Position numbers and translations under genes: made by a program | Source: Chara braunii | Lineage: Eukaryota; Plantae; Charophyceae | Assembly (NCBI GenBank): GCA_003427395.1 | Contig: BFEA01000016.1 | Location: forward strand, 969,712 to 1,033,711 | Direction of reading: 5' to 3' | Length of the DNA: 64,000 nucleotides | Notes under the pieces: generated by a model | The model's database searches: none | What the model was told of the DNA's origin: nothing | What the model saw: only the letters and a program-made list of their open reading frames with translations | Shown here: piece by piece, positions 1 through 32,521 of the stretch | How positions within the stretch are numbered: position 1 is the first letter of the stretch | Layout of the letters: every line of letters begins with the position of its first letter

Positions 1-600
1 TTGGCAGCGCTTTTCGTAGAAAAAATGCCTTCTCAAAATTTATACTAGCTCAAATATGAAAGCAAAAATAATATTTAACACTCGAAAGTCCAATTTTGTC
101 AAACTCCCTGAATTAACAAACGTTTTGGCTGCACTCCTTTTTGAAAAAGAGACTTTCCATATTTTTACTAAGTCAGATATGAACTCAAACATAAGACTTG
201 AGTTCTTTTTACTAAGTCAGATATGAACTCAAACATAAGACTTGAGCTCTACCAAAACAAAATTTAACTAACTCCTTAGATTTGTAGAAATTTCGGTAGC
301 GTTTACCGTAGAGAAAGTAACTTTCCACAATTTATACAAAGCTAAGTCCAGAATCAAAAAATAACTTTGACTTCTTAAAGTCCAATTTTGTCCAACCCCC
401 CGAATTAGTAAAATTTTGGGCAGCACTCCCTTTAGAAAAGTAAACTTTTCATATTTTTACTAAGCCATATACAAAACTTAGACAACTTGAACTTTGAAAA
501 GTCAAATTGTGACTAACTCCTTGGTTTTGTAAAAATTTTGACAACACTTCCCGTAGGGAAAGTAGCTGACCAAGATTTATACAAGACCAAGTATAAGGAA
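1..600. repeat. ~120-125 bp degenerate tandem array (5 units) in LTR
   Basis: Recurring (T)TTCGGCAGCGCTTCCCGTAG..AAAG...TTTATAC unit near 1, 125, 291, 416, 536; homologous arrays at 13535-14100, 19220-19760, 28420-28975, 61800-61940. Confidence 0.85.
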
Positions 601-713
601 AGATCCCAAAAAATGCGAGAATTAACATAAGGAAAAAATAATTAACTGAAAAAATACAGGAATTGAACTAACTCCTATGACTCTAGCACGTGGCGAGCAA
701 CTAAAACAAGTAC

Positions 714-1888
714 CTGCCAAACAGAAACTTAGAGTAAGTAGTGATCTCACTCTTTCATATGCAAGGCCAAACTACATTGGTAAGTACTCTCACCAGTCCC
801 CACGTCAAATCCTCATAGATTAGTTCATAAAACCCTCAGATGATTTATCCTTTATAACCAACTTACATATGACGTGGTGCTAGACCATTCAACTTAGAAA
901 CAATGTTTAGCATGCTTTAGGATATACACGAACAGATTGCAAACTACTTCTCTCTTCTTAGGACATATTACTAGACCGTTCAGCTTAGAAACAATGTCTA
1001 GTCGCCCTGAACTGTTTAATATCCAAAGTTTAATAATTTATGACTTTGTTCTCAAAATAAATGAAAATATGGGCAAGGGACTGAGCCATTGAACTTAGAA
1101 ATAATGCTCAGGTTGCCCAGATTACTTCCAACTATATTTTGTGGTTTTCCTTCTCTTCTTAGTGATATGGCTTAGCGCTGGACTATTCAACTTAAAAATC
1201 GTATTCAGCTGACAGTTCAAATGCAATTATAAATAAGGTATTTTCTGTTATAGTCAGTTTATACTTATGTACGTGGTTTTCAGGCTAAACCATTAAGCTT
1301 AGAAACAATGCTTAGCCTTACACCAGAGCTCCTCCCTCAGAAATAAAACAAGAGGCTGAACCATTCAGCTTAGAAATAATGTTCAACATATCCTCAAATC
1401 ATTCGAAGCATGAAGTTTGATTCTTCAGCCCAACCTCAGTCAGACCCCCCCCCAAAAAAATAAACAGACCAAGTCATTCACTTAGAAACAATTCTTAGTC
1501 TCAAAGATCAGCCAAGCGAACCCTTAGAAATAAATATAGCAATCAGGTCATTCAACTTAGAAACAATGTCTGGTCCTTCATAAAACAACCAAATAAACAT
1601 AGCCTTGGACCATTCAACTTAGAAACAATGCCCGGTCCTTGGTTAACCTAGTCAACTACATGCAAAAATGTCTTTCTCCCACCTTACCCCAGTTCATCCC
1701 TTAATCTGCTTTCAGTCAAAATAAAGAAGGAACTTAAGCTTCACTCTCACACGTTCTTTCTATTCAGTCTGATTGAGTCATGAAAAGAAAGCAAAAGTCA
1801 TAGGGGAACTCATGCATACAACAGTTAAACTAGAGGAAGATAGTCACACATGGGTATAAAAGGTTCATACACACAGAAGATGGTATAC
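714..1888 (-). other. Predicted intron in the LTR leader enclosing the hairpin array
   Basis: Minus-strand donor CAG|GTATAC at 1888 and acceptor TTTCTGTTTGGCAG| at 714; equivalent sites at 21109/19881 and 30261/29093, donor also at 63616. Confidence 0.5.
878..1636 (-). repeat. Hairpin array, loop type 1 (9 units)
   Basis: Core CATTCAACTTAGAAACAATG in units starting ~878, 970, 1081, 1177, 1282, 1355, 1466, 1542, 1605, each flanked by a different 5-9 bp inverted repeat. Confidence 0.9.
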
Positions 1889-2150
1889 CTGATAGTTCTC
1901 TGCCTCTAGAACTCCTCCTGAGTTCCGGCAGAACTCCCACAATCGGTGGGCAGACTCCCCACAGAGTCTTAATGCGGTCCTACGGGTTGCATCCCGTCTG
2001 CCGCCTTCCTCTCGTAACCACAGACTAGACTTAGAGTAAGAAGGGTAGAGGGAGAAACATTAAGACTCTCATATACAAGAAGGGTGTTCTCAGGCTCACG
2101 CGAGAGGGCCTTGATTCCTTGACTCACGTGAGGGTCCCGCAATGATGGTC
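1889..2150 (-). promoter_or_regulatory. Conserved block, probable core promoter / first exon of the LTR transcript
   Basis: Segment shared by all six LTR copies (also ~15385-15645, 21110-21372, 30262-30513, 51625-51885, 63617-63855); a pyrimidine patch on the minus strand is followed by a splice donor. Confidence 0.45.
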
Positions 2151-5100
2151 AAAGCGTAGCCAGAACTTGGTCAACTGAAGTCAAATCGTCAACCGTTGAC
2201 TCCCTGCCAATCCTTTCAATTGCAACAACTATCCCCCCCCCTTTTTGGAGAGTTTGATCACCACTCCTAATCGTAGTCCCGCCATCTCCGGCCAGACTTA
2301 TAACACATAGCCCAACGACAACAACTTGTAGCAAACCTGCATGCTCAACAAACCGTGCGCAGCTACATGACTCAAAGGTAAATCCCAACAATGAAATTCA
2401 TTAGTGCAACAAAACTCAATAATATATGGCAACGTTCAGCGTAAAACCCATGTGCAGTCATAGCAGGCACTCCATCCCTGCACTATAATGTATTACTACA
2501 GGCTCAGAGACACCATACGTATAACAATTGTGTTTGCACAACGATTTGTATGGCAACCCCCAAAAAACTCCGAGCTCAGCAAGGTGAGGCAAAAGTGCAG
2601 CGAGGTCAAAAATCTTCATTCAGAAATAAGAAGCACAACAAATGTTGCTCGAAGCTCACTGAGAGGGGTTAAGCGTAGTAGTTAACTTCACAGTGGCTAC
2701 GACAGTTCGTACTCCAAAACAACGGTACGCAATGTGCAGTGATACATAAGTCGTTCACCAACGCCTCAGCAAAACACCGAGATGTCGTAAGTCCGGCTCA
2801 GTGGACCGCAAATGAACTTCTCCACTGGAGGTCAATCCTAACGGCAAGGTGTGAACAGGCCCCTCAATCCAGCACAGCTTGCTGTATCCGCTCACTCAAT
2901 TGGTTGTAAACAATATCCGCCCGTTTCTTGCCCAGCAACGGCGGTTCATCCATGTAAGTTCAGTCGTCCTCTTGCTCGTGCTCACTCTGAGCCGTCAGTT
3001 TGACGCTCAGGGAGAGTCTCACATCTGCACTCACTGGCAGCCTTGTAGTTCGACACTGTAACTCGACCTGCGGTCTACCTTACACTGCCAACTCGCCAGG
3101 TAAGTTTTCTCCCCCTTTCTCATTTGCCCACCCGTTCTCCTACTGAACCTGTTCCACTGATGTATGACCGCTCCTATTGCCAACAAGCAACCAAGGACTC
3201 GGGACCGAACGGGCGATCCAGATGACTGGTATGAGCAAAGTGAATACAGACACCACGATGACGGGCAGTGCTCTGACGACTATCTATGCCACACTGCTAT
3301 CCTGCTGGTTTCAAACAACGTAACGAGCATCTCGACTAAAAGCAACTACGCGCTAGAGGAATAGAGAGAGACTTCCGTTCTTGATAAAATAAACAAATTC
3401 AAAATGAATCATTCACCAGAATATGGAAATATACACCACTACTCGTGCATAGGTGTGCGTGTGTGTGTGAGAGAGAGGGTATTCCACCATTTGGCTGCAC
3501 AACACGTCGGCCAACGGGTAAGTATCCAACCTCGTGACCGGCCTTAGGTTACTCTCATCGATAGAATGAGCAAAATCGAATGAATCTTCTGCTAGAGCAC
3601 GACGAAATACGCCACCACTCTAAAATTGTCTCCCCCGAGCACAACCCGTTATTTGCACACCTAAAAAACTAGCCACTAAGCTCTAATCCTAACATCACCA
3701 TTGAATCCGCCAGTCCTCAATCTCCCCAGGACGCACCTCCCCTCATCTGATTTAGTCAAGAGTCTGATGGGTTAATCCCCTACCATATCCGCTCCTTCAC
3801 GCACTCCGCGCACATTTTTTTTCCAGTATTTTTTTCTATACTAATCTTCACACCAATCTGACTCCGGATCCCGGTTCGCAAGCGCCGAAAACCCCCGATC
3901 CACTTGGCCAGTTTGGTCAAGGATCACACGCGTTGCTTACTTCTTACTGTGCCATGGCTCGTTCCTTCACCATCTCTTCTATCGACTGTTTCCGGCGCCA
4001 AATCATACTCGATTCATCTCTCTTGCTGTGTTCGTGCCCGATGTTTTCACCACCTCCGTTGACCTCGTCCCTGCTTCGTTCGACAACGCTTAACGCAGCG
4101 GCCTTCGGGCAGCTCAAGTATTTGAGGAAAACTTCCAAGGGACCTACTACTTGGATGATTCACAAAGGTTTTCCACCTCTACGCCCGGGCGAACGAACTA
4201 TTCGCACATGTCAGTTCCGTCGTAGCCCCTCCCTCCTCTCGCCCTACTCAGGTTGTTGCCGCCTTGAACCTCCAACAGACAGCCCCCACAGAGACAACTA
4301 GTCGCAGTGCGGCCTGCTACAAGGCTAGCGCGGGCCTTGGTGGGTGGGTGCGATGCAATTCTCGGTCGTGGTAACATGCGACCGAGGTGAAGTAAGGTCC
4401 CATGTGAGCAAGACACGCTGCGGCCTCCGCCCTGGTGCCCTCTGCCGCTACCCAGGCATAGTCCAACCCCAATAGGGCCCGGCGAGCATGCTCACACTCA
4501 AACCATCTCGCAACAGATCATGGTTGGCGGACAGTGCATCTGCGGCAATCCCCACCAGTCAAGTTTTTTCCGCTTCGTGGGCTAACCAGCCACGGGCTTG
4601 CACGCACGTCGGCTTCCTCGGCCCACACCCTAGGATGGTGGGACCAAGGACCCTCACCAGCATCCCGAAAGACTTAGGAACCCGTAGGTCAACGAAATGA
4701 AGAGCTCGTGCTCAAAACCCTCGACCATCACGACGACCTCCAAATCCAGCGTCACACCGGAGTCAAAGAACATCGGAGCAGAATAACAATAAATAATAAA
4801 AAATTTATTTAGAAATTTTTAATCGTCAGGAAGCGGCGGATGAAACAAAAAGGGACCCGCTATACCGCCCCGACTGCGCCGACGACAAAACCAAGGATGA
4901 TAGCCCCGTCAGACCCTCAACCCCTCGTTCTCTCTATGCCATTCTGATATCCCCGCGTCGTCACCGCTCGATCTCGATGCCTGAATCTCTTTGATGAAAA
5001 AGTCCGACGCTGTATCCAATAGTGCTAGGCCCAAGGCAAGGTCTCGCTTTGACGGACACCTAAGTAAACAGATATTGTGCGACGCTTAGATCTACCGAAG

Positions 5101-5850
5101 CATTCTCAAAATCACATGGTTGTCGATGTCGTCCTTCAAGTTCGCACAGATCACAGATAAACAACCAATCACGAGACGAAATCTTTTTAATCCTAGTTTA
5201 ATCATAAAATAAAAGTCTGGTCGGTGACCAACGCCGATTTTCACAATCATCAAAGGGAAAAAAAATCATGCGCGCCTTAAGTCTGCGCGTCCACACACTC
5301 TCTATCCTAGTCAAACATCCAGGCAGTGTGGTCAAGACACAGTTGTGAATCGTGCGGCGCACTCAAATCCTAAACCAAACTTATTTTCTGTCACTTGCAA
5401 AAACCAGGGCGGATACCCTTGTAAGGGTATTCGCGCCGACAGCTTACCGGACCATATTAAGCGGCGTCCCTGTCGCATCGCAGAATTGAAAACTATCAAC
5501 TCATCCATAATCCAAAATGTTGACGAGAAAAAAACCAATCCGATTAGCCGACAGACTCCGGTTCGAGGCCTCCATCAATCTATGCCAAACATAACTATAT
5601 GGTGTCAAGATTCCAACCTGGGTCTCCATTGTCTTGACACTAGGACGCCGGGATACTGACATATGTATTACAATATAAGTTTCAGTGACCCTCTCAACCG
5701 TCCTCTCCCCATTGTCATAGACAAACGCTGACTTCTCGTTAAGTGTCCCATTTTGTTTCTACCCTGCAAGCAGGGCCATAACTAAGGACGCGGGCCCTAA
5801 GTGAGGCCTTTGAAGGTATTCTTGCCTTCCTCTCAACAATTCGTACAATC

Positions 5851-5852
<2 letters not shown>

Positions 5853-5912
<60 letters not shown>
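5853..5912. repeat. (AT)n/(ATATAC)n microsatellite
   Basis: Direct reading. Confidence 0.95.
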
Positions 5913-5915
<3 letters not shown>

Positions 5916-7645
5916 CCTATCTCAGACTCTTCCTGCAGTCTAGTACAGGAAGGTCATGTCTCCATCTTGGCCCACCATAGTCTTGGTGATTGAGCCAGAT
6001 CTACGGCCCATCACGTTGTTATTTTAGCGGTGGTGCCCTCGCATGTTGCACCACGATAGGCTTTCTCCTGATAAGCATTCAATCAGGACTCTTAAAAAGA
6101 CTCAATTGAGTCAACTCGTTATCTCGACATCATCCCACAGGAAGTAAAACCCTCCTAGGTGGCCACACCCCTTTACGTCTTTACTCCTTTGGTGAGACGT
6201 GGGCCTGCTGCCAGGTTACACCGATCAGCAGCCAATACCAGGGGTTATGCCCCAGTAATGCTAAACTTTACCGTTATATTCTCGAAAATGCCTTAAATTT
6301 AGCACAAGTGGCTAGACGGTGTATCGCAACAATACAGGCTTATTGCGAGACTACGCAAAGGTCTGTCACACATAAAAGGCATTTACCAGTCCTCAGTGGG
6401 ACAACACAGGGAACATAACATCCTCTCCACATTCACAAAACAAAATCACCGCCAGATTCACAAGGTCGTGGCTTCCCAACTTGATCACAGTAAGAAAACC
6501 ACACATTTCAATGACATCTCACTAATGAGCAATCCTTGCAACCTTGAAAATTTCACCAATGACCAAACAAAAACTTCATCCTTCTCGTCAAGCTTCATCT
6601 TTGAAATCAACTTTCCATGCCATTAAATTTTTTAACCATCTTTCAGTCAAAGGAGACCTCACTCATTAGGTCTCTCAGTCATCCCTCTCTCTAGGATGAA
6701 CTTTCAAACGACATTTTTAAAACATCTTCTTCCTGAAGATGAGTCTCAAAATAAACAAAAGACCACCTTCCCATGTGAAGTCGCCTCAACCATGAAACAA
6801 TTTAACACTGAGAGACCAACTTATGGGTCCTCGTCACAACTCAATAATAAATATTTGGCATGACAAGCATTCGAGTCTCAAAGACTCATACATCTTTTAG
6901 GGTTCTCACATCCTTCTCAAGAACAAACTGCACTTCCTCCCCTTATACCCGACCCTATCATCCGCCCGTGGGCAGACCGCACGAGTATACCGAAGAGTAG
7001 ACAGTTCACACTCATTCACATTCGCTACACACAAAACACACGAGATGTTTCACATACATCTCTCACACACAGTCATCATACATCAGGATAAAACCACACA
7101 TGTGAGAGTGATTGTGATCGTCGTGTACAACGGATAATCTCAAGGAATCTTAACTCAATATACACTCAGAGGTGGGATATCCCACCTAAAGAATGTAGCA
7201 AAAAAGAGTTTTGGGTCACATATACACTTAGAGTTGAACAATCTCAACTCAAAATGACATTAGTATCACACAATTGTCATGACTTCCCTAACAGAACTAA
7301 ACTGAAGCAGTTTTAATTAGGTTGTAATCACGCCTCTTAACTCGAGGGGGATCAACTAAAACCCAAGGCGTGCCCAAGTATTATAAAAGTAACACAAAGC
7401 ACACTAGACAATCACTGCGTTACTAAATGGGTCTCACACAAACGTCACATACTATACTTCCTAGGCTAAAGAGTCCAACCTTCATCCACACTAAAGTCAC
7501 TCCCTAAGCCTCTCATACCTCCTGTCTATAACTCGGGTTATTTTACCGAACCATTATTGCGAAACCCCTTCCCTTCGTCCTCTATGCTATTTACAGTAAC
7601 TACATGACTGGGGTTTCTTACTTATGCTTGTGATCCTCTCAATCT

Positions 7646-8632
7646 TTAGGTCCTCTTCACACAAATCCTCTCTCTCCACAACCACAATTTAGAGGCAGTG
7701 CTTGATGTTTTATCGTGCCGCGAAGTCTCTTTCCTCGTTCCCCCAAGCATGGTCGGGTCGATATATTTCCCAGCTCTGTCAAAAACATTCCCTTCCATAT
7801 TAGTCTTTATTAGGCCACTTGCCTCATCTGCCCTTCGTTCATGACATAATTTTATTATGTGTCTCTCTTTGGCACAATGCCTGCAAGTGGTTTTCTTCCA
7901 ATCGACTTTTCCTCCTCGAAATTCATTGCCAGCGTCTAAATTCACCTGAGCTCGACTGTTTTTCTTTCTCTGGGCTTCGGCTAGATTAGGGCGCTCACGC
8001 CCTTTTTTCCAATTACCCCTCTCCTCATCTCTTCCTCCCTCTCGAGCACTAGACCACTTTCTTTGGATCCTCTTGCGGTGGAGAGGATCTCGTTCATTAC
8101 CTTCTATCATCTCCTCACCTCTGCCTGCCGGCTCACCCAATATCTCTCTTGGAGTCTTCCGCTTGCCTCTTCTGAGTTCCTCCAATTGCGCAATTCTCTC
8201 TCCTAATATCTTTGATTCTCTTTGTTCATCAGCTACCCGTTCTTGTACTGACGCATCTCCAACAACTAGCGCAATCTAAGGGATTCTGCTTGGCTGAATG
8301 AGATCATCTTCTTCTGGAAACCTTTTTCTCAGAAAGTTATCGAGCCCACTCCACATCCTTGACTTCAATACGAAAATGTCTACTTCCTCGCTGACGTTCT
8401 CACAAACGAATAACGGTAGCAGACTCGACATAGTTATCTTGTCCCACATCTTTGCGAGGCTAAAATCATAATAGGCGTGGAGAAAATCAGACAAATTCCT
8501 TCCTTGGAACAACAAAGCTCGGAGATTTGAGGTCATCGAGTCGTGCACCGACTCGCACAATAACACCTTCGTGAGGCAAGAACTCCTTCAAAGCAGGATC
8601 TTGGTGAAACCACTTTCTTCAAGTTGAGCCAT
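7646..8632 (-). pseudogene. gag: gag of E1, one frame with in-frame stops
   Basis: ATG at 8632, stops at 8590 and 8278, same frame through ORFs 8276-8566 and 7646-8185. CRHCAKERHIIKLC is a Cx2Cx4Hx4C knuckle. LLFQGRNLSDFL aligns with LYFNGRYVTGFV of the plus-strand gag. Confidence 0.85.
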
Positions 8633-8969
8633 GATGTCGAGGCTGGCCTGACAAGCATGACAAGCAATGGATCATCAAGCTGTAACGCAAGAAAGCTCTA
8701 AACAAATAAGGGTTAGTAAAACTGCTAATATTCAAATCGCACTAACCCTTTTCTCGCCCACATAACTAAACCTTAACTTTAGTTACCCTTACTCTAACCT
8801 TAAGGGTACTATAAACAATATACACCCCACATAGGTGGGGCTTTCAAAACCAGTTATAGATAGACAGTAGTAGTGGCTACAATAGTGATTGGTCCTCGTA
8901 CTCGCAGTGTAAAAAAAATCATAGACGAGTCTTAAGAAAGATACACTTGGCAGAATATGAGGACACACT

Positions 8970-9524
8970 CTATCGACTCAATGTTGCCCGAATCTCATCC
9001 CAATCTTCACTTCTTTCACCCGGATTGTGAGAGTTAGCATATGCGTCAACCACATTGGCCATGTTCCTAAGTCCTTGACTAGGGGGTAAAAACCTTAGGT
9101 CTAGGTACATGTCATATATCATTTCGTATGTATAGCGTTCATACCCGCATTCTTGCGTCCTCCCAGCGGCTTGTGCTGCGGCCTCTATCCTCGTCTGTCC
9201 CCCAAAACGTTTCTCTACGAGAAATTTGGGCAGGACAATTCGTAGCGGGGTTGAAGGTAAAACAAACTTTCCAACACACTTGACCACTATATGGGTCTCC
9301 ACCTGCTCTTCTCCTTCATCGACCTTGCCTCTCGCCCACTTTGTCATAGCTCCCTCAGCTATTCGCAAAGACCTCGCAAGCAGGCTCCCATGCCCAAACG
9401 CCAATTCGCCCCCATGTTTGACCCAAAATGAGGAAGAGACATATAGTGTTACCCTCATGATCGCACAACCCTGATCATCGTCAAATCCCGACTCGATCCA
9501 GACAAAAATACCCGTATCTATCAA
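8970..9524 (-). CDS. Accessory ORF family B member upstream of gag (unknown function, 5' end decayed)
   Basis: 184-codon open frame; GIFVWIES, TLYVSSSFW, VLPKFL and IYDMYLDLRFLPP align with ORFs 34989-35675 and 35653-36354. Confidence 0.65.
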   Translation of the reverse strand: MIDTGIFVWIESGFDDDQGCAIMRVTLYVSSSFWVKHGGELAFGHGSLLARSLRIAEGAMTKWARGKVDEGEEQVETHIVVKCVGKFVLPSTPLRIVLPKFLVEKRFGGQTRIEAAAQAAGRTQECGYERYTYEMIYDMYLDLRFLPPSQGLRNMANVVDAYANSHNPGERSEDWDEIRATLSR

Positions 9525-10074
9525 TATGCCCCACCATGATGAGATATATTATCCTTGACTTACATTGACAAAGATATCTCAAATCCATCTTCCTTTTTCA
9601 CTGGCAAAACCATATTGAGATCTTCCTTAGCAAAAGGCATCCTGAGCTGCCTTTGCTCTGGTCTGGGTTCTGCCCATCACATAAAAAACGTCCAGCATAC
9701 GCCTTCTGTTACTATGTTGATAATCACCTTCTACAATCTCTACTCTTAAAGTCTTAGCTTCAAATCATCTTTCACTAAAATTCATCCTTTCCAGTGTTTA
9801 CGACCCCCCAGCTTAGAGGGAATAATACCGGTAATATATCATGGTAATAATACATTCACAACTATCAAAATTCATAACAATAATTACGAATGGAAAATGA
9901 TAAATTACCTTAGTAACTGTCATCAACAATACTCATAAAAATCAAATACATTATACACAAGCTTGTCAGCTACCCAGAAGCATAAACAAATACCTCATAA
10001 TGATAAACTTTATACTAACAGACATATTATATGATAGCCACGTCTCCCCAACTTTAACAAAAGTATACTGTGAC

Positions 10075-10400
10075 GATGAGCAGTGTAATCCTTTTTAGGA
10101 TTGATAGCATCTAAAATCCCTGAGCCCTGGTCAAGGATCAAGCCTCACTGCTTCTCCCTTCGATTCTAGCATCTGCACTTGCAGACCCTTGTCAATAAAG
10201 TAAACACCCTCACCATACACGCTTCGGGGTGTGTCGTCCCATCCTGTGCTGACGAACCCACTTGACACAAAAACAGTTGGGGATTCACCCCTTACCTCTT
10301 TGTGACATGTAGTAGCTGCTTCCTTCATAGGCCATGGCCTAACAAGGCTCAAACACTTTCCTCCTATTCAGTAGTGGTGTAGTCATCTTATCACAGAGGA
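10075..10400 (-). pseudogene. Accessory ORF (A-like), decayed
   Basis: WPMKEAATTCHKEVRGESPT..RSVYGEGVYFIDKGLQ versus WPLGEAATTCHREVGGESPT..RSMYGEVVYFIGKGLQ at 58783-59040, with synonymous changes (GCA/GCG, ACA/ACC, TGT/TGC). Confidence 0.6.
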
Positions 10401-11099
10401 TACAACAACAATACCCCACTATGGACCAGGAACATAGTTCCGGCGTGGGTCTCACTACTACCTACAAGACAAAGTTATAATTTCCTCAAAGCCATTTCTC
10501 AAGGGAACAATAACATAGGATTGCACACTTCCTTAGGGTAGACTTTACACGTTGACCATTCTATGAGAAAAAACGTTTCTCAAGGAAATGGTTACTCGAT
10601 TCTCCTCTGAATCCGCACCAGACGTGGATTCTGCACAATGCTTCTACCCCTCTCTGAAGAGCAATCCGAATACACAGGCTTAATAGACAACCATAAGCCG
10701 ATAATTGAACTTGAGATGCTCATATAAATCCTTGCAGACTGATAAGTTCAAGTACATACCTTAGATAAATAGCCCATACGAAATATTTCTGAAAGGGATA
10801 AATTTAAAATAACATCAAACACACAATCATATATAAATAGTCACTAAAAAAGACTTACTCAGATAAAAAATTGACATATATGGATAAGTTCAATATATAA
10901 CTCAAAGAGAAAATGCCCTCAGAAAGTTAGTCTCAAGTGCTTAGCTTCAACCCATAGATTCAAGTGGATGGTCCAAACCTGGAAAGGTTCAAGCGAAGGT
11001 CAAACATCACCTACATCTCGTTGCTCTATCAAATGTAAGCAAAAATGATTCAAGTGTTAGCCCCTTCACTATTATCCCGACTGCCCCTAGGATCTGATA

Positions 11100-11356
11100 T
11101 CTCTCTCGCAGAGAAGGTACTATGTAGACATACTACATCTCGTAATCTCTTCTATTGAGGTCATAACACGGTGTTCCCTGCACCTATCTGCTGCGTTATG
11201 TGCCTAGTTCACAACACATCACACGAGGCAGACCTCACTCTTCCTTGACGAATAACTGCTTAGAACCCAGACTTAAGGATCCCAATCCACGCTCACGAAA
11301 AACGTTCAGCGCCTTTAGCCTAACTCTCCTCGAAGTCCCTCGACGACTTCTAACAT
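11100..11356 (-). pseudogene. Second, more decayed family B paralog in E1
   Basis: MLEVVEG/RRVRLKALNVFRERG resembles MVRIVEAAEGGRVKIERVDLLRERE of ORF 34241; downstream YVYIVPSL matches the IFVKPEAW-type motif; frameshifted. Confidence 0.4.
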
Positions 11357-11817
11357 AATAGGCTCCCTTACTCATCCTCGACCTTACTCTAAGGTAAAAG
11401 TTCCAAGTTGCTCTTATGACCACTCAGATAACATATGCGACCATAATAGGTATCTTATCGGGCCAACTTCCACAATGGACATGCTGAACCATGTTGACAC
11501 CACCTCATCTTACCCTAGCCATATCAGATATACAAAGCATCATCTAAATCCATCAACTATCAAGGTCAGAGGGGGTGACAACTCCAACTACTATCACGCT
11601 AATCAGAGTACGTGAGCGTGTACTCCTAACGTCTATATCTCGCGCCACCCTTACTACACTAGCCAAAACCATCTCACATAATCAACTCTCACTCGCTCTC
11701 TATCCAATACCATCAATCGATTAACCATAAAAACTCAAAGAAACTTCTCATTTTGCCAAGTTCTCACATTCCCATCCCGGATGTCGTTCCACGAGGGACA
11801 ACGGTAAGCAACCGTTA

Positions 11818-11835
11818 TCCCCAGCAATAACAGCA
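11818..11835 (-). promoter_or_regulatory. Degenerate tRNA-Asp primer-binding site of E1
   Basis: Minus strand TGCTGTTATTGCTGGGGA versus TGGCGCCGTTGCCGGGGA in E2, same 2-nt offset from the LTR end; differences are mostly transitions. Confidence 0.75.
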
Positions 11836-11837
11836 CC

Positions 11838-14800
11838 TGTCGAGCGCATCGGTCCCATGCAGGGCGGGAACCTCCCGGTCTCGTCATGCAAGAGTTGGTC
11901 TAAACTCGCGATACACACGGAGCTTCCGCAAACCGCTCCGGCTGAGTGCGCCAACCATACCTCTCGTGAACCCCTACGACAGGATAGGGCCAACGCGAGG
12001 TACAACTTACCTCCACCTTACGGGAGTTGTCACCTCCTTTCGGTGGGCATATCCCCGCCGAACTATCTGTCCACAGTACGAAAGCTAATCAGTTGCAATC
12101 GCAGAGGTGGACCAGACGAGGGCGTTTCTCGTACGCTGTAGCGTAGGGGGTATGCGCGGCCCCACACCTCTATCGGATTCGCATGCGAACCTATGCACTG
12201 AGGATCTGAAGTCCCAAGCGTGGCTCGTTGTCAGTCGACTAGGACGCATCCCAGTCACCACGCATCACACCACACTTAGAACATAAAAAATAAACACACA
12301 CACACACACATACGAAACGACACAAAACAAAACAACACAACAACACTCCTACTTCTTTTTGTATCCAACCCATAACCTTCCGACGCGGAAATCGGATAGA
12401 CGACACGCGTGAGACTTAGTATAAAACCGCGCGAACACATGGTATTCCCACATCGACCACCAATGCATGCTTACTCAAGCGGTCGAAATCATGGCGTACT
12501 ATGTAGTACCCATAATCATTCGCTCCTCGATAATCTCGATGGTCGTGTTCGACACTCAAGTGTCCGTTGACACCCGCCATGAGGGGTTAATCTCTCGACG
12601 CTAAACAACTGCCCAGTGCGGTTGAGAACCACACCCTCTTCTGCACCCTGCGAAGAGTCGGTGGTACACAAGTTCACACATGTGGTGGCAATCATCTCTT
12701 ATCGCCCTGGAGACCAGCTCCATCATCCAGGGCCTTGAGATAACTCAAGCAGTTTGATTTTGGTGGCTTCCATTTACTACAACGTCCAACTATAAATATT
12801 CTAAAAAGTAAAGGGGTAAAAGGGGATCTCCCTTATCTCTTAACACATAATCTGTTTAACCCTTGCGCAAGGTCACAATAGGCCCCGCGAACACTCAAGG
12901 CATATGTATGTACATGTATATAAAGGGTTGTAAATATGTGACGATCACTCCTCATGATCACAGTGAGACTCCTCTCAGCCATATAGATATATGTGATCAC
13001 AGACAGTCAAATTCAAAGTCCGAACAACAAACATATATCGCTTTAACCATACAAGTCTCACTCTTTGTGCAACTCTCAAAATAAAATACTCAGTATCTTT
13101 GTTAAATGACAATTCAATAAAGTCCATGTGAAAAATCAGCAAAAAAAACAAATCACAGGGCTAAAGCCTTTAGGTTGAGTGGCAAGAGTGTATTGGAGTT
13201 GAGTCGTAAACTGACGAATCGACAACCGACCTGTCATCAGTGATAACAAAAGATGATCCTTGTAGGATCAAGCTGAATTTAACCAAAATCATGAATCAAA
13301 CAATCAAGAGGACCTGTAACATAAGACGGACCAATCCCCAAGCTAGATCTATAAGTCTAATAGAGAATAGTCTCCATATCATGATTTCACTCAAAATCGT
13401 CATAATTAACTAAGCCTAAATCTACCCCTAAACAAGTGTCCAAAGACATGTAGACCCTGACAAAATCTCCTTTATGCAGAGTGGATCGCCAGAATCGTCA
13501 CCTGTCAAAATATAATCTATCTCCTCTAAACTAAGAAAATTTCGGCAGCGCTTCCCGTAGGAAAAATGTTTTCTCAAAATTTATACTAGCTCAAATATGA
13601 AAACATAAATAATTTTTAACACTAGAAAGTCAAATGTTGTCTAACTCCCTGAATTACTAAACATTTTGGCAGCACTCTCTCATTAGAAAATGAGACTTCT
13701 CATATTTATTCTAAGTCAGATATGAACTCAAACATAAGACTTGAGTTCTATTAAGATAAAATTTAACTAACTCCTTAGATTTGTAGAAATTTCGGTAGCG
13801 CTCCCCATAGAGAAAGTAGCTTTCCAAAATTTATACAAAGCTAAGTTCAAAATCTAAAAATAATTTTGACTTTTCAAGGTCCAATTTTGTCTAACCCCCC
13901 GAATTAGCAAAACTTTGGGCAGCACTCCCCTTAAAAAATTAGACTTTCCATATTTTTACTAAGTCATATACAAAACTTAGACAAGTTGAACTTTAAAAAG
14001 TTAAATCGTGACTAACTCATTGGTTTTGTAAAAATTTCGACAGCGCTCCCCGTAGAGAAAGTAACTTACCAAGATTTATACAAGACCAAGTATAAGAAAA
14101 GATCCCTGAAAATGTTAGAATGAATATAAGTAGAAAAAACTTCGCTCAGAAAATGCAAGAATTGAACTAACTCTTACGACTCTAGCACGTAGCGAGCAAC
14201 TAAAGCAACTACCCGCCAAACAGAAACTTAGACTAAGTAGTGATTTCACTCAGCCATATACAAAGCCAGACCACATTGGTAAGTACTCTCACCAGTCCCT
14301 ACGTCAAATCCTCATAGATTAGTTCATGAAACCCTCAGATGATTTATCCTTTATACCCAACTTACATATTGCATGGTGCTAGACCATTCAACTTAGAAAC
14401 AATGTAGCATGCCTTAGGATATACACAAACAGATTCCACAACTACTTCTCTCTTCTTTGAGCATATAATTAGACCATTCAACTTAGAAACAATGTTTAGT
14501 CAGCCTGAACTGTTTAATATCAAAAGTTCAATAAAATCTGACTTTGTTTTCAAAAGAAATGAAAATATGGGTAGGAGACTGAGCCATTCAACTTAGAAAT
14601 ATTGCTCAGCTTGCCCAGATTACTTGCAATTATATTTTGTGGCTTTCCTTTTCTTCTCGGTGATATGACTTAGCGCTGGACCATTCAGCTTAAGAACAAT
14701 GTCCAACTGGCAGTTCACATGCAAATATAAATAAAATATTTTTTGTTATACTCAATTTATACTTATGTACGTGGTTTTCAGGCTAAACCATTAAGCTTAG

Positions 14801-17386
14801 AAACAATGCTTAACCTTACACTAAAGATCCTCCCTCAGAAATAAATAAGAGGCTGAACCATTCAACTTAGAAACAATGTTCAACCTATCATCGAATCATT
14901 CAAAGCATGAAGTTTGATTCTTCAACCCAACCTCAATCAGAAACCCCAAAAGAAATAGACAGACCAAACCATTCACGTAGAAACAATTCTTGGTCTCAAA
15001 GATCAGCCTAACGAACCTTTAAAAATAAATATAGCAACCAAGTCATTCAACTTAGAAACAATGTCTGGTCCGTCATAAAACAACCAAATAAACATAGCTC
15101 TTGCCATTCAGCTTAGAAACAATACCCAGTCCTTGGTTGACCCAGTCAACTACAAGCAAAACTGCTTTCCTCCCACCTTTCCCCAGTTCATCTCTTAATC
15201 TGTTTTCAGTCAAAGTAAAGAAGGAACTTAAGCTTTACTCTCACATATTCTTTCCATTCAGTCTGATTGAGTCATGAAAATAATGCAGAAGTCATAGGGG
15301 AACTCATGCATACAACAATCAAACTAGAGGGAGATAGTCACACATGGGTATACTGGGGTCATACAGACAGTAGATGGTATAACTGATAGTTCTCTGCATC
15401 CATGACTCCTCACGAGTTCCAGCAGAGCTCCCGCAATCGGTGGAAAGACTCCCCACAGAGTCTTGATGTGGTCCTACGGGTTGCATCCCACTTGCCGCCT
15501 TCCTCTCGTAACCACAGACTAGACTTAGAGTAAGAAGGGTAGAGGGAGAAACATTAAGACTCTCAGATACAAGAAGGGTGCTTTCAGGCTCGCGAGAGAG
15601 GACCTTGATTCCTTGACTCAGCCGAGAGCCCCGTAATGATGACCAAAGCGTAGCCAGAACTCGGTCAACTGAAGTCAAATTGTCAACCGTTGACTCCCTG
15701 CCAATCCTTTCAATTGCAGTAACGATCCCCCCTTCCTTTTTGGAGAGTTTGATCACCACACCTAGTCGTAGTCCCGCCACCTCCAACCAGACTTCTGCCA
15801 CGTAGCCCAATGGCAACAACTTGTAGCAAACCTTCATGCTCAACAAACCGTGCGCGACTACATTGCTCAAATGTAAATCCCAGCAGCGAAATCCATTAGC
15901 GCAAGAAAACTCAATAATATATGCCAACGTGCAGCGCAAAACCCAGGTGCAGTTATAGCAGGCACTCCATTGGTGCACTATAATGTACTACTACAGGCTC
16001 AGAAACACTATACATATAGCAATTGTGTATGCACTGCGTGCACAACGATTTGTATGGCAACCCCAGAAAAAGCTCCGAGCTCAGCAAGGTGAGGCAAAAG
16101 TGCAACGAGTTCAAAAATCTTGATTCAGAAATAAGAAGCACAACATCTGTTGCTCGAAGCTCACTAGGAGGGGTTAATAGTAGTTGTTAACTTCACAGTG
16201 ACCACGACAGTTCGGACTCCAAAACAGCGGGTACGCAATGTGCAATGATACATAGTCCGTTCACCAACGCCTCAGCAAAACACCGAGATGTCATAAGTCC
16301 GGCTCCTTGGACCGCAGGTGAACTTCTCCACTGGAGGCCAATCCTAACGGGAAGGTGTGAACCCCTCAATCCAGCACAACATGCTGTATCCGCTCACTCA
16401 ATTGACTGTAAACAATATTCGCCTGATTCTTACCCAGCAACGGTGGCTCATGCATGTAAGTCCAATCCTCCCTCTTGCTCGTTCTCACTTTGAGCCGTCA
16501 GTTTGACGCTTAGGGAGAGTCTCACATCTGCACTCGCCGGCAGCCTTGTAGTTCGACACCGTAACTCGACCTTCGGTCTACATCACACTGCTAGCTCGCC
16601 AGGTAAGTTTTCTCCCACTTTTTCATTCGCCCTCCCGTTCTCCCACTGAACCCGTTCCACTGGTGTATGACCGCTCCTATTACCAACAACCAACCGAGGA
16701 ATCAGGACTGAATGGGCGATCCAGATGAATGGTATGAGCAAAGCAAATACAACCACCACGATGAAGGGCGGCGCTCGGACGACTATCTCTGCCACACCAC
16801 TATCCTGTTGGCTTCAAACAAAGCAACGAGCGTCGCGACTAAAAGCAACTACACGCGAGAGGAATAGAGAGAGACTTCCTTTCTCGATAGAATAAACAAA
16901 TTCGAAATGAATCATCCCCCAGAATATGGAATTCAAGTTATACACCACTACTCGTGCGTAGGTGTGCGTAGGTGTGCGTGTGTGTGTGTGTGAGAGAGAG
17001 AGAGGGTATTCCACCATTAGGTTGCACAACGCGTCTGCCAACGGGTAAGTATCCAACCTCGTGTCCGGCCTTAGGTTACTCTTATCGATAGAATGAGCAA
17101 AATCGAATGAATCTTCTGCTAGAGCACGACAAAATACTCCACCACTCTGAAACTGTCTCCCCGCTCAAAGCCCGTTATTCGCACACCTAAAAAACTAGCC
17201 ACTAAGCTCTAATCCTAGCATCACCATTGAATCCACCAGTCCTCAATCCCCCCAGGACACACCTCCCCTCATCCGATTCTGTCAAGAGTTGGATGGGCTA
17301 ATCTCCTACCATATCCGCTCCTTCACACACTCCACGCATACTTCTTTTTCACCGACTCTTTCACCGACTCAGGATTCCGGTTCGCA
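11838..17386 (-). repeat. E1 5' LTR (~5.5 kb)
   Basis: TG at 11838 adjacent to the PBS; CA at 17385-17386 where homology to 1-3880 stops; right boundary less certain than left. Confidence 0.7.
14377..15130 (-). repeat. Hairpin array, loop type 1 (9 units)
   Basis: Unit-for-unit homologous to 878-1636. Confidence 0.9.
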
Positions 17387-18465: not shown

Positions 18466-20059
18466 TTAACGTCCAACCATAAAATGTTATTAAAAAAATC
18501 CCTCTTTTCTCTCGCTATAAGTCTGTCTGATCAAAACGCGCACGATCTTAAATCGATCGAGCGAATATACCACATACACATACCGGAGTTACAAAACATG
18601 AGGCGATCACTCTCACAATTACGATGTGACTCAAGATATACTTATGATCGCAGACAAAGTCAAATTTGAACATTCATTCACAAAACATACTTATAATCAT
18701 ATGAAGAATTCACCATTATCACACCACGCGCTACATAGGGTCAACTTCAACCGACCTCTCTGCACGCATACCCATTCCCTTATCCGCATAAGCCCCAACC
18801 TTTGTCAAACCTTCCAAAATAAAACACTCAGTACTTTTTAAATGGTCATTTAACAGAAATCCGGATAAAACCCCAAAGAAACAAATCAACCCACATGGGC
18901 TAAGGCCTTTAGATTGAGAAGCGAGAGTGAGTTAGAGTTGAGTCGGAAACCGACTTATTATCCAAAGATAACAAAAAATGATATTCGTAGGATCAACTTG
19001 AAGCTAGTCAAACCTCGAATCGATCTAATAAGAGTGACCTGCAACACAGCGCAGACCAGTGCCCAAACTATGCTTGAGTGATTACGAGATAATCCTACCT
19101 TCCTACCTCACCTCTGATACTTATTTGAAAATGCCAGAAATTTCAACGGTATCGCCTCTATGTGAGGGCAGGTTGCCAAACTCTCAAGGTTCTAAAATAT
19201 TTGAAGGCCTCTATATTTTATAAAATTTCGGCAGTGTTTTCCGTAGGGAAAGTACCTTTGAAAAATTTATGTACGACTGAATATAAAATCTGAAAGCGAT
19301 CTTCTAACTTTAGAAGTCAAATTTTGTCCAACTCCTTTATTTAGTAAAAAATTGGGCAGCTTCTCCTCTAGACACGTGGATCTATACTAAGTCAAATATA
19401 AACTCAAGATAAAAATTGAATTATGTCAGGGAAAAATTGAACGAACTCTTTTAGATTTGTAGAAATTTCAGCAACGCTTCCAGTAGGAAAAGTGTCTTTC
19501 CAAAATTTATACAAAGCTAAATATGAAATTTAAAAGTAACTCTGACTTCAAAAAGCTAATTTTTGAATTAGTAAAAATTTGGGCAACATCTCCTTTAGAG
19601 AAGTAGGCTTCCCATATTTTTACTAAGTCATGTACGAACTCAAACAAAAGTTGTACTTTGTAAAAAACAAATATTTGACTAACTCTTTGGATTTGCAAAA
19701 ATTTGGGCAACAATTCCCTTAGCGAACATGCTTCTCCAAGATTTATAAAAAGCCAAGAATAAGAAAACTTATCTAAAAAAATGTTGAAATTGAACTAAGT
19801 AAAATAAACTTAGTTAAAAAATGCAAGAATTGAACTAACTCCGATAATTCCAGCACATGGCGAGCATCTAAAGTAACTACCTATCAAAGTTAAGACTCAG
19901 AGCAAGTAGAGCCCATACTCAACCTTATGCAATTTCATATGACAATGGGTACTAAGTACTCTCACCAAAGAAGTCCCAAGTTGTTTTTCACAAAAGAAAT
20001 TTATTTACCCTCAGTTAAGTGAACCCCAATACCCCAACTTACATATGACATAAGAGAGA

Positions 20060-20852
20060 CTACAACATTCTACTTAGAAACAATATCAAGTTTTTGTCTT
20101 TATTTATAAACAAAACACGTGGCACGATAAAATTTATCTCTTCATTGGGCATATGGCTAAGCCATTCAACTTACAAACCCTGCTTAATCTCCCTGAACCA
20201 TTTAATATCCAAGTTATATATAGCTTTATGCATTTAGTGATCAAAGGTGAACGTATGACTAAACCATTCAACTTAGAAACAAACGTTCAGTCTGCCTGAA
20301 TCGGACCTTTTGATTATACTTTTAATTAAGTACTCTCTTCTTTTAGTGATAGGCTATAGTCAGACCATTCAACTTAGAAACTTTGTCTGACTTGCTGGTT
20401 CATATAAAATATATAACATACAATATAGGAAGAACTATTTTCATATTTTTCTATTTGCGTGCGTGACCTCTCAAACTAAGTCATTCAACTTAGAAACAAT
20501 ACTTAGTCCTAACCTCAATTCCTTTAGAAAGAAACACATAAAGAGTTGAGTCATTCAACTTAGAAACAAATACTTAACCCGTTCCTTCAAAATTCAAAGA
20601 AAAGCAGGGGTCCTATACCATTAAACTTAAAAACAAATGTCAGGGCCTGTTCAGAAACCTCCCCAAAAAGCAGGTAGACCAAGTCATTCAACTTAGAAAC
20701 AATCTTTGGTCGAGAAAAACAATCCATTCATGTCCTCAAATCAAAGCCACAACGACCAGACTATTTAACTTAGAGGAATTGTCTAACCTATCAGAAGACA
20801 GAACAAAGAAACATAGCAGTTCGACCATTCAACTTAAGAACAATGCCTAACC
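20060..20852 (-). repeat. Hairpin array, loop type 1 (10 units)
   Basis: Same loop with changed but paired stems, e.g. GTCAGAC..GTCTGAC, ACTAAGT..ACTTAGT, GACCAAG..TTTGGTC. Confidence 0.9.
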
Positions 20853-21590
20853 GTTTGTACAATCCACAATCTAAACCACCTTCCCCCCACCTTCCCTTCA
20901 ATTCATCCCTCTTCCACTCCGAGTTTCAAACAAAATAAGAAAGTAAAACTGAATTTTTGTGCACGTGTTCTTTTACTTTACTTTGAATTCAGTTCAGAAA
21001 GTCAAACAGTAAAACTTGGCAGGGACGCATGCATTCATATTGAGACAATCATAAAAGGATGTAAACATAAGGGCTTTATGTGAGTTTATCAAAAGTAAGG
21101 GTGATGTACCTCTCATTTCTCTGCCTATATCTCCTTTTGAGTTTTGACAGAGCTCCCTCAATCAATGGGTAGACCTTCTAAAAGGTTTTGTTGCGGTCTT
21201 GTGGGTTGCAATCCCACTTGCCGCCTTCCTTTCGTAACCGCATATTAGACATAGAGTAAGAAGGGCAGAAAGGAGGAGTCTCAGACACTCGAGATACAAG
21301 AAGGGGACAACTCAACTCGCGCGAGAGAGCCTTGAAGCCTTCAGTCACCTGAGGGCCCCGCAATGGTGGTCAAAACGCTTAGAAGCCGACAAAAACACGA
21401 CTGACTCACAGCAACAGTCTCCTTTGAAAATACAATAGTTGCACAAGATCAGGAGGAAGCGTCGACACCTTGAGACCACAATTGTTGTTGTCAAGACTAG
21501 TGGTGCTTAGTAAAGGCAAAATGTCGCAATTGTCCATTGTTACCTCGACAGGCTAAGCTTGAAGTAGCAATATTTGTCTTTGTAACAAAC

Positions 21591-24374: not shown

Positions 24375-25598
24375 TTTTTTTTATTTTTTTTTTGAAAACG
24401 CCCCCTTCAGTGATAGTGGTGCTGGTAAGAGCAGGCACTACTAGCACCTTGGGAGAGACTCCATCTATTGGTGGGGAGCATCACATGCTGGAAAACGGGT
24501 CCAGCGTCCCATATCCGGTATAGATTTGGAATATAACAGGAAAAGAGTAAGAGACTCCTACCTGCATTGATTACCCTGGAATCCAGAGGATCGAACGAGC
24601 AAGATATTGAAAAAAGGGGAGAGAACCTCTTCGCCTTGAAACAGGCGCTAGATACCTACTACTACAAACTAGTTCCTCCCTCCCCCCCCCCAACCCTTTA
24701 TCTAGCCACCGCACCTCTTCACCACCCATTATGGTGTCAGATCTTATTTGTCAAACTAGTGTTGAGCTTTCTATGTTCTGGGTGCAGGATCTTAATATAT
24801 CATCCATCCATTCCGTACCACTGCATTTCCACTAGACAGTTTGATGGGGGGCGAAAAAAGTCCGGGAATTCTTCAGGGGGTTTCAATGGAATCGCTGCAT
24901 CCACTTGGGTTCATTCATGGAATCTCAGTCCGTAGTCTCTTACTCTCTCCGTTCCTCGTTGGTCCTCCCCTGGTTCTTTGTATTCTCCATTCCATTTCAC
25001 CATTCCTATCCTCCCTCCATCTACACCCCCAAGCCAGTTTGAGTTGAATTCCTGGATTTTTTGTTTGATGTCTTTCCGCTTGTCGAGGAGTTGGATTTGT
25101 GTTTTGGCGCCATTCCATTTTGCAGTTATTTCTGTCTAGATCTGTTGCTAAACACTTTATGTAAATTTTGGTCCTTCCAATCTCCCCCCCTCCATCTCGA
25201 AGGTGCATCCTCGTCTCCAGAGTGCCCAAAGTATCCCCCTTCGTCCCATCCTAAACATATTACCGGTGAATTCGTCTATCTGGTCTAACTGGTCCTTAGG
25301 CCAGGCTTCGCACAACAAGGCTTTCCAGTCCCACGGCCACTGGGCCTTTGTTCCTAGTTGTTCCCACACTCTATCCCACCATCTCCACAACCAGAGTGCC
25401 CCCGGACATTGGAGGAATATATGTTCGATTGTTTCTGGTCGTTTTCGGGAGGAGAACGCATTTGTGCACAACTTGAACCATGGGAGAGCTCGCCCTCTTT
25501 GTTCCAGGGATGTTCTATCTATCAACCAGTTATTTGTTGGAAGACAATGGTGCTCTAGATGCCATTGAAGTGAGGTCAGTTTGGCCGGCTTTGCCTTT
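24375..25598 (-). mobile_element. 5'-truncated L1-like LINE (~1.2 kb)
   Basis: Poly(A) tail (T run 24375-24393), ACCA on both sides, ORF2 C-terminus. Confidence 0.85.
25157..25598 (-). pseudogene. LINE ORF2 C-terminal fragment with zf-RVT-type motif
   Basis: W..HHCLPT...ETIEHIFLQCPGALWLW matches the zf-RVT pattern of L1-clade ORF2. Confidence 0.8.
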
Positions 25599-26989: not shown

Positions 26990-27179
26990 TATATATATAT
27001 ATATATATTTATATATATGTCTTTTTGTATCCCTCGGCTGTAGGTTTTCATTCATTAGGTATTTCAGCTTTTATAAAGACTTTACTCTTTATACTCATAT
27101 TAGTGGTTGGTTTAGTTGATGCTTGGCGAAAAGGAGCTTTACAATGGTCTTAGTCTATTTAAATTCCCATTTCTATTTT

Positions 27180-32240: not shown

Positions 32241-32324
<84 letters not shown>

Positions 32325-32406
32325 NNNNNNNNNNNNNNNNNNNNNNNNNNNNNNNNNNNNNNNNNNNNNNNNNNNNNNNNNNNNNNNNNNNNNNNNNNNN
32401 NNNNNN

Positions 32407-32475
<69 letters not shown>

Positions 32476-32521
32476 GGGGACAGGGTGCGTCCGGCGGCTG
32501 AGAGATGGGAGGGTTGTGACA
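30514..32521 (+). repeat. 5' LTR of the plus-strand Gypsy
   Basis: Matches 46364-48187; contains a long (GA)n and a gap. Confidence 0.9.
32245..32471. repeat. (GA)n microsatellite spanning assembly gap 32325-32406
   Basis: Direct reading. Confidence 0.95.

Follow-up and report, generated by a model that had tools for sequence, protein, structure and literature searches.

Covarying hairpin arrays in the long terminal repeats of a gag-only Ty3/gypsy retrotransposon of the streptophyte alga Chara braunii

The 64,000-nt stretch of Chara braunii DNA analyzed herein (the window; contig BFEA01000016.1, positions 969,712 to 1,033,711, assembly GCA_003427395.1) is a nest of eukaryotic transposons with a G+C content of 46%. 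Among these is a non-autonomous, gag-only, pol-less, Athila-like Ty3/gypsy retrotransposon, the long terminal repeats (LTRs) of which bear arrays of small hairpins on the gag-sense strand, here the minus strand. An earlier reading of the DNA sequence, the original prediction, had described one of these arrays (878-1636) as nine copies of an invariant 20-nt loop, each closed by a different stem and separated by unique spacers, and had noted its recurrence in four LTR copies. The pairing and covariation data presented below indicate that the hairpins are a selected folded nucleic-acid element, in which two tiers of stem are under constraint to pair while their sequence is free.

The 20-nt core, CATTCAACTTAGAAACAATG, had 31 matches in the window at three or fewer mismatches, all of them on the plus strand, compared with 0 in 100 shuffles. 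Indel-tolerant matching, with degenerate units included, resolved four arrays, all on the minus strand, that aligned colinearly, unit for unit. Array A1 in LTR copy 1 (878-1636) has nine units, with plus-strand core starts at 886, 977, 1087, 1184, 1291, 1362, 1475, 1549, and 1611, and all nine were found on the minus strand by the covariance model R1 (see below). A2 in LTR copy 2 (14377-15130) also has nine units and, counted in sense orientation from the 5′ end of the LTR, spans nt 582-1345, while A3 in copy 3 (20058-20852) has ten, the additional one being unit 6b at 20619. The nine units of A4 in copy 4 (29255-30012) were placed by core matches and alignment. The nine copies first reported and their recurrence in four LTRs were therefore borne out, as were the quoted stems, CTAGAC/GTCTAG, CTGAGC/GCTCAG, GGCTAAAC/GCTTAGCC, GCTGAAC/GTTCAAC, and GACCAAG/CTTAGTC, the last three of which have one A·C or C·A mismatch each.

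In units of this form, termed A-type, an outer stem of 6-8 bp is followed by a single bulged base (C on the plus strand, G on the minus strand), an ATT/AAT pairing, and a 12-nt center. More generally, a unit comprises a UAAG(U/A)U hexaloop, a closing stem of ~3 bp, a bulge or short internal loop, and an outer stem of 6-9 bp; units are 60-110 nt apart and number 9-15 per LTR. The invariant 20-nt loop of the original prediction is specific to the subfamily, and its 20 nt resolve into three parts, namely, a bulged base, the inner stem, and the loop proper. The spacers, in turn, are not fully unique, since spacers 1→2 and 3→4 share sequence on direct reading. This residual ~200-bp dimer homology suggests that the array probably grew by duplication of a ~200-bp dimer. 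Tandem Repeats Finder (TRF) reported no tandem repeat at 878-1636 or at the other arrays.

Pairing was quantified in an alignment of 37 units from the window. On the plus strand, 79.4% of cells were paired, compared with 72.4% after shuffling and 30-44% in slid controls; on the minus strand the figure was 81.8%. Across both strands, shuffles gave 72-74%, and sliding the partners by 1-3 columns left 21-49% paired. Cells in which both partners had changed numbered 59 (plus) and 57 (minus), compared with 28-29 ± 6 in shuffles (0/500). The arms of a given unit formed 4.8-5.6 Watson-Crick pairs out of 7 with each other, versus 3.2-3.8 with the arms of other units (permutation p, 5e-5 to 4e-3). This difference was significant in each array taken singly, and the permutation test is independent of both orthology and conversion between units.

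Comparison of orthologous units revealed the same behavior. Between A3, in the most diverged LTR copy, and the other copies, both sides had changed in 14-16 of 63 pairs, where 9-10 were expected (Fisher p, 0.002-0.02), and about ten of these were changes from one Watson-Crick pair to another. The example originally given, unit 4, which reads CTGGAC/GTCCAA at 14677 and GTCAGAC/GTCTGAC at 20359, resolves into two double compensatory changes and one repaired mismatch. Compared with the three other copies, A3 had an identity of 0.53-0.55 over the spacers and 0.60-0.63 over the outer stems, and of 0.85-0.87 over the inner stem and 0.84-0.85 over the loop, such that the outer stems have diverged to near the spacer level and have nevertheless kept their pairing. 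Among the three young copies, differences were about equal across these classes, as expected from post-insertion decay, and their majority state has 54 Watson-Crick pairs out of 63. Ordinary tandem-repeat decay, which the original prediction had already discounted, accounts for neither the silence of TRF nor outer stems that diverge almost like spacers yet pair.

A second subfamily of the element, represented by LTRs c5 and c6, carries orthologous arrays on the minus strand at the same LTR position, alignable unit for unit with the first subfamily. The c6 array (62300-63375) has ~14 units, most with the head CGCCCTAACCCTAGGGTACG (plus strand), and that of c5 (50905-51385), a deletion derivative of c6, is shortened to ~6 units. 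The head here has an inner stem of 5-6 bp and a tetraloop. As in the first subfamily, each unit has its own outer stem with complementary arms (ACTAGGC/GCCTAGT, ACTGGGC/GCCCAGT, GTTGGGC/GCCCAAC, AGTTGGAC/GTCCAACT, and GGCTAAGC/GCTTAGTC). Twenty c5/c6 units folded at −8 to −23 kcal/mol, with a mean z of −2.2 (plus) and −1.6 (minus) relative to shuffles. Because most c5/c6 heads differ while the outer stems again pair, loop invariance is a property of the individual subfamily, and the outer stem is a more general feature than the loop sequence. The head CGCCCTAACCCTAGGGTACG also contains a perfect palindrome, ACCCTAGGGT, and reads GGGTTAGGG on the sense strand, which is telomere- or telobox-like.

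Eight further loci, all from the same assembly, were fetched via homologues of the gag-like protein of the element. In six of the eight (L004, L005, L007, L008, L009, and L010), arrays built alike are present, in every case on the gag-sense strand; in the three stretches that reach both repeat copies (L005, L009, and L010) the arrays lie ~13-15 kb apart. No such arrays were seen in L003, which belongs to another gypsy family, in L006, where there is an LTR and the array region falls outside the stretch, or in L011. L003, a member of the family of the nested gypsy element described below, has homogeneous ~94-bp tandem repeats at 2997-3700 and 20847-21500, which are ~17.9 kb apart and flank pol (presumably as parts of two LTRs), a contrast with the hairpin arrays.

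Different head types were observed among these loci, namely, CATTGTTTCTAAGATGAATG in L010, CTCTATAAGTTTAGG in L007 to L009, and GTCCATAAGATTGGAC in L005 and L004. Pairs were counted in fixed registers for each head type, with L5-type heads, which have variable linkers, left out. L7-type units (n = 24) were 88.9% paired, versus 78.1% after shuffling and 24-45% in slid controls, with double changes in 10 of 12 pairs (0/500). For A-type units from these other loci (n = 26), pairing was 84.5% versus 74.2% shuffled, with 44 double-change cells versus 19.8. The original observation that pairing is kept while the stems change therefore extends from paralogous units and LTR copies to independent Chara braunii loci.

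The inner stem covaries as well. When all 119 TAAG[ACT]T sites within the arrays were aligned by their hexamer, the closing pair was AU in 23, CG in 17, and GC in 3, the next pair UA in 40 and CG in 13, and the one thereafter UA in 28 and CG in 23; observed forms include UUC/GAA, CUA/UAG, CUG/CAG, CAA/UUG, and UCCA/UGGA. The evidence for this stem is the covariation score (0.44, compared with 0.37 at a slide of −1, 0.32 at +3, and 0.07-0.21 at other slides), because the control slid by −1 pairs a similar share of cells (64.9% versus 61.4%). Common across the families are the UAAG(U/A)U hexaloop, a covarying inner stem, a bulge or linker, and a covarying outer stem. The covariance model R1, built from the window units, gave 69 hits in 272 kb, every one on the gag-sense strand and inside an LTR array, and 32 of the 69 were outside the training set. 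The design, hexaloop and LTR position included, is retained by families that share only 53-70% identity in their gag-like proteins.

In all families, a conserved motif, C(T/A)TATGTAAGTTGG(G/T)TAT, marks the 3′ boundary of the array in sense orientation (window 854-871, minus strand; L004 20334; L005 6354; L007 19280; L008 20153; L009 5107 and 19998) and includes the same TAAGTT hexamer without an obvious hairpin. Several candidate identities for the units were rejected. A CRISPR-like array is incompatible with a eukaryotic host and with spacers that are orthologous between LTR copies and subfamilies. Scans for the exact 20-mer in collections of metagenomes and of prokaryote genomes returned one match each, judged to be chance given the collection size. 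A CCAAT box, a heat-shock element, pol III boxes, and loop self-complementarity were dismissed by inspection, with only the minority loop variant AAGCTT being palindromic. A kissing or long-range partner for the loop was also considered: ACTTAGGAAC (9063-9072, minus strand), on the sense strand of the gag-like region, is complementary to the A-type loop with one G-U pair, but this sole reverse-complement 10-mer match at one mismatch is at chance level (5.6 expected).

Imperfect pairs and folding bear on which strand adopts the structure. The original prediction had pointed to many C-A mismatches on the plus strand, i.e., G-U pairs on the minus strand. In the window, this bias by itself was not significant (27:17 for A·C cells, which are G-U on the sense strand, against G·T cells), and counting eight pairs yielded 36:24. 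Once the other loci were added, an excess of ~2:1 emerged. In L7-type units, the sense-strand ratio of G-U to A-C was 41:13 (23:4 once two fixed columns are set aside), and in A-type units of other loci it was 21:21 overall and 15:6 without two bulge-adjacent columns; a conservative grouped count with the other loci was 36:18 (p = 0.02). RNAalifold predicted no pairs on the plus-strand alignment and weakly recovered the outer stem on that of the sense strand. Folding energies of the 37 A-type units were below those of shuffles (mean z, −1.2 to −1.4), with z-scores that did not separate the strands. Together, there is moderate support for a structure on the sense strand, that is, in RNA or in plus-strand DNA.

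The placement of the arrays within LTRs, and of gag sense on the minus strand, was upheld by the boundaries of the element. Its direct repeats have TG...CA ends, with the plus-strand form TGTCGAGC...(C/A/T)(A/G)(T/G)TTGCA, left ends at 11838, 23945, 50160, and 60090, and right ends at 2224, 15718, 21443, and 51961. LTR copy 1 (1-2224) is cut by the window start and has its sense-orientation 5′ end, TGCAATTG, at 2224. Copy 2 (11838-15718) is complete at 3,881 bp and reads TGTCGAGC...CAATTGCA on the plus strand. Copy 3 (18678-21443) is truncated and the most diverged, with ~75% identity to copies 1, 2, and 4, and copy 4 (23945-30513) has internal insertions and is cut at 30513 by a nested Ty3/gypsy element. 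In the second subfamily, c5 (50160-51961) is 1.8 kb long and lacks the middle of the LTR, while c6 (60090-63928) is 3.8 kb. All six are oriented on the minus strand.

A primer binding site (PBS) of the tRNA-Asp/Asn type, TGGCGCCGTTGCC, is located at 60075-60087 on the minus strand, 2 nt beyond the LTR end, and a decayed copy at ~11817-11835. The same sequence occurs exactly in L010 (8917) and L006 (8594), and the tRNA-Asp/Asn PBS of ATHILA is an identical 13-mer (bioRxiv 10.64898/2026.03.20.713144). The polypurine tract (PPT), CTCCAAAAAGGGGGGGGG on the sense strand, lies directly upstream of the LTR at 2233-2250, with a second copy at 15719-15745; the motif AAAAAGGGGGGGGG is found on the sense strand at both places, and GAGGGGG adjoins c5. 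Because the PPT precedes the LTR start and the PBS follows the LTR end on the minus strand (right and left of the LTR, respectively, in window coordinates), this is the sense strand. Every LTR is joined to a PPT and internal sequence, forming LTR-internal-LTR-internal tandems, not single elements, with outer ends that lie beyond the window. Such tandems were seen at three places (window 1-17350, window 50160-64000, and L010 856-21546), with a period of ~13.3-14.9 kb.

The Ty3/gypsy element that splits LTR copy 4 occupies 30514-48152 on the plus strand and has 1.8-kb LTRs (30514-32296 and 46364-48152) that are 94% identical. Its ORFs (open reading frames) encode protease, reverse transcriptase, and RNase H domains, followed by an ORF that aligns, in related loci, with the part of pol beyond RNase H and is taken as integrase; masked runs of N fall at 32325-32406, 36570-37529, and 45255-45419. 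The reverse transcriptase ORF of this neighboring element matched Chara braunii proteins at up to 86% identity. Other repeats were also noted. Beside the hairpin array in the same LTR is a ~250-bp tandem repeat (1-540, 13536-14083, 19222-19881, and 28588-29040; 2.2 copies with 76% match in LTR copy 2), each unit of which holds the motif TTTCGGCAGCGCT(C/T)CCCGTAG(A/G)GAAA, and a related 84-bp pair is present in c6 at 61791-61916. A 98-bp tandem repeat (49318-49731; 4.2 copies, 88% match), flanked by (AG)n tracts, lies between the 3′ LTR of the nested element and c5.

Coding capacity of the carrier appears limited to a decayed gag-like ORF with a CX2CX4HX4C knuckle, placed by tblastn at 7691-9640 on the minus strand. 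A sense-strand piece of it (8973-9548) had 12 homologues at 28-65% identity in a HMMER search of 1.84 billion representative proteins. Each of the eight that were looked up is a hypothetical protein of Chara braunii, and one carries the annotation CCHC-type protein. The CCHC piece alone found no matches, an accidental ORF across the LTR edge (15319-15978) found nothing, and Pfam identified no domain in 20 pieces of the internal region or in ten gag-like homologues. Searches by tblastn with the protease, reverse transcriptase, RNase H, and integrase of the neighboring gypsy element found no pol in the array-bearing elements, and the carrier is on these grounds gag-only and non-autonomous. A distant relative in L011 has a gag-like ORF together with reverse transcriptase, RNase H, and integrase, i.e., is autonomous, and has no array. 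Since a gag-like CCHC protein has been kept and pol is absent, cis signals usable in trans are a possible target of selection.

Where the array would fall in a transcript depends on the start site. In sense orientation, it begins ~580 nt from the LTR 5′ end (582-1345 nt), and ~2.5 kb separate its end from the PBS. The LTR opens with ~330 nt (window 1896-2224, 15390-15718, and equivalents; L010 4950-5300) that form a GC-rich block, the most conserved long one across all subfamilies and L010, that ends at a TATA-like GGTATA(C/A)C; a promoter, an att site, or a plus-strand priming region are possibilities for this block. If transcription starts near the LTR 3′ end, as it does in most LTR elements, the array would be in U3 and hence in the 3′ untranslated region (UTR) of the genomic RNA. 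A start just past the conserved 5′ block would instead place it in a long leader.

The explanation we favor, at a probability of roughly 0.45, is that the arrays are multivalent protein-binding RNA hairpins on the genomic RNA of the element, with a role in packaging, export, or stability. The array would be carried as part of the genomic RNA and would display one loop motif many times over for recognition by a sequence-specific RNA-binding protein. The obvious candidate binder is the CCHC Gag-like protein of the element itself or that of an autonomous partner, and a host export or stability factor may serve instead. Many weak sites in a row could provide high avidity, by which the RNA might be favored for packaging, export, or stabilization. 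Zinc knuckles of retroviral nucleocapsid bind exposed G residues in loops, and the Rex response element (RxRE), the Rec response element (RcRE), and the constitutive transport element (CTE) are RNA elements of LTRs or 3′ UTRs. A more specific proposal, which we regard as doubtful, is that the arrays are the operator side of a retroelement-encoded pair, in which a Chara-specific CCHC Gag-like protein with no known domain would read UAAG(U/A)U on many hairpins simultaneously and the array would let pol-less elements be packaged by borrowed machinery, and in which subfamilies with other heads (such as the gag-less c5/c6 type, with the head CCCUAGGG) would have switched partner.

Several observations weigh against protein-bound hairpins on genomic RNA. 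The G-U bias is absent from the majority state of the three young copies in the window (4:3) and, in the count over every column, from A-type units of other loci (21:21), and the cells are not independent. The folds are modest, with an RNAalifold consensus of only −1.2 kcal/mol and single A-type hairpins at a weak mean of −6 to −8 kcal/mol, and the compensatory changes counted between orthologues (14-16 of 63 pairs) may be inflated by block gene conversion between units. Two TATA-like candidates for anchoring the transcription start (12906-12927, sense; 1850-1870, antisense) were not conserved in other copies and were rejected. Head stems differ between L005 and L007 even though their gags are 86% identical. 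Finally, the c5/c6 head is different and the element of that subfamily has no gag-like ORF, such that one protein-loop pair cannot explain all arrays.

Alternatively, the arrays could act at the DNA level, as repeated protein-binding sites in a U3 enhancer or insulator, or as cruciforms, with the head as recognition sequence and multiplicity tuning transcription or chromatin. The array is probably in U3, far upstream of the PBS, and the c5/c6 head has both the perfect palindrome ACCCTAGGGT and the telobox-like AACCCTA. The near equality of G·T and A·C in the inferred ancestral state of the window (4:3) looks as if neither strand were privileged, whereas inclusion of more loci produced the 2:1 excess of G-U on the sense strand. 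Precedents exist in the Su(Hw) insulator of Drosophila gypsy, with 12 binding sites, and in the Tnt1 BII and Tto1 13-bp repeats, which are U3 enhancers. However, recognition of double-stranded DNA needs no covarying flanking arms, and the outer stems here lack conserved sequence and have kept two-tier pairing, with one orientation for all units. Cruciform extrusion is energetically unfavorable for imperfect palindromes of 10-14 bp with 6-12 nt centers, and we consider action at the DNA level unlikely. A functionless origin seems distinctly unlikely, in which templated switching in quasi-palindromes, during replication or reverse transcription, copies the arms, and short-tract conversion homogenizes the heads. 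Template switching is reported to create and maintain hairpins. Nearly all changes are transitions, several compensatory pairs fall at CpG or CHG-like mirrored sites, and the majority state in the window is without strand bias. Stems in A3 resemble those of other units (4 like 8, 5 like 7), as block conversion predicts, and heads that are homogeneous within subfamilies and different between them show the pattern of concerted evolution. Conversion can move complementary stems, but it cannot create more than 15 different complementary pairs, and unit-specific pairing is significant in every single array. Loops, moreover, are far more conserved than spacers, and the hexaloop and LTR position persist across the families with 53-70% identical gag-like proteins.

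A sense-strand structure is equally that of plus-strand DNA, in which G·T, the most tolerated DNA mismatch, would fit the observed bias, so that hairpins in U3 plus-strand DNA could aid pausing, strand transfer, or priming in reverse transcription. The LTR-internal-LTR-internal tandems in three places are of a kind attributed to template switching by reverse transcriptase. Plus-strand DNA is made on a template and is not long single-stranded, we know of no case of U3 hairpin arrays serving reverse transcription, and a conserved hexaloop sequence suggests protein recognition over mere pausing; we view such a role as very unlikely. Least probable are processing sites or small-RNA precursors, with cleavage of the hairpins freeing the spacers or small RNAs, as the original prediction had allowed. 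The layout of repeats with spacers of 60-110 nt invites this idea, but the spacers are inherited, have orthologues in other copies and subfamilies, and decay as neutral sequence would, and no microRNA or other Rfam family was matched at gathering score. Bulged stems of 10-14 bp are also too short for Dicer-like processing.

The original prediction had recognized no described LTR feature in the array, and neither did our comparisons. Rfam gave no match at gathering score in the window or in five of the loci (only chance-level hits, E = 0.17-1.7), and we found no description of such hairpin arrays in the literature. A matching architecture is known from protein-binding RNA hairpins. In the five iron-responsive elements (IREs) of the transferrin-receptor 3′ UTR and the operators of phages MS2 and PP7, a conserved loop and a conserved bulged base are combined with a stem constrained only to pair, and such hairpins are repeated within one UTR to allow multivalent binding. 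The Chara units share this architecture and its repetition, but their sequence and loop are unrelated, and they reside in a transposon LTR, not in a cellular mRNA or a phage. Retroviral counterparts are protein-bound RNAs in U3/R or by the 3′ LTR, such as the RxRE of human T-cell leukemia virus (HTLV), the RcRE of the human endogenous retrovirus HERV-K, the CTE of Mason-Pfizer monkey virus (MPMV), the direct repeats of Rous sarcoma virus (RSV), and packaging signals. These cis elements often have several binding sites and promote export, stability, or packaging. They are, however, single complex folds, whereas the Chara arrays consist of 9-15 near-identical small hairpins and have no sequence or Rfam similarity to them. 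The Su(Hw), Tnt1 BII, and Tto1 arrays resemble those of Chara as short conserved motifs repeated with variable spacers in a Ty3/gypsy or copia element, but they are read as double-stranded DNA and are without covarying inverted-repeat arms.

Among plant retrotransposons, the non-chromovirus Ogre/Tat/Athila elements have tRNA-Asp priming, LTRs of up to ~5 kb, and tandem-repeat arrays (PMC6317226), and a 2025 survey states that the origin and function of these arrays are unknown (PMC11963269). Such arrays are common in the long LTRs and in the UTRs of these elements. The Chara element, with its 3.9-kb LTR, ATHILA-identical PBS, large non-coding regions, and family-specific internal repeats, is like them. 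Its hairpin units, in contrast, are not head-to-tail monomers; only the ~35-45-nt hairpin is conserved between diverged spacers, and its stems covary in two tiers. For the arrays described in the two sources (PMC6317226, PMC11963269), we found no conserved secondary structure reported.

These results provide a signature of selection on folded structure in one such array, repeated in several families of one streptophyte alga. They turn a descriptive feature into a testable cis-element with a candidate partner, the CCHC Gag-like protein, and offer a view of how non-autonomous LTR elements stay mobile. Should the arrays prove to be a mutational by-product, they would instead show cleanly, in a natural setting, how hairpins template mutation in a retroelement. 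If, on the other hand, the Gag-operator reading is true, they would represent a natural multivalent hairpin-tethering system and the first function for LTR repeat arrays of the Athila/Tat type.

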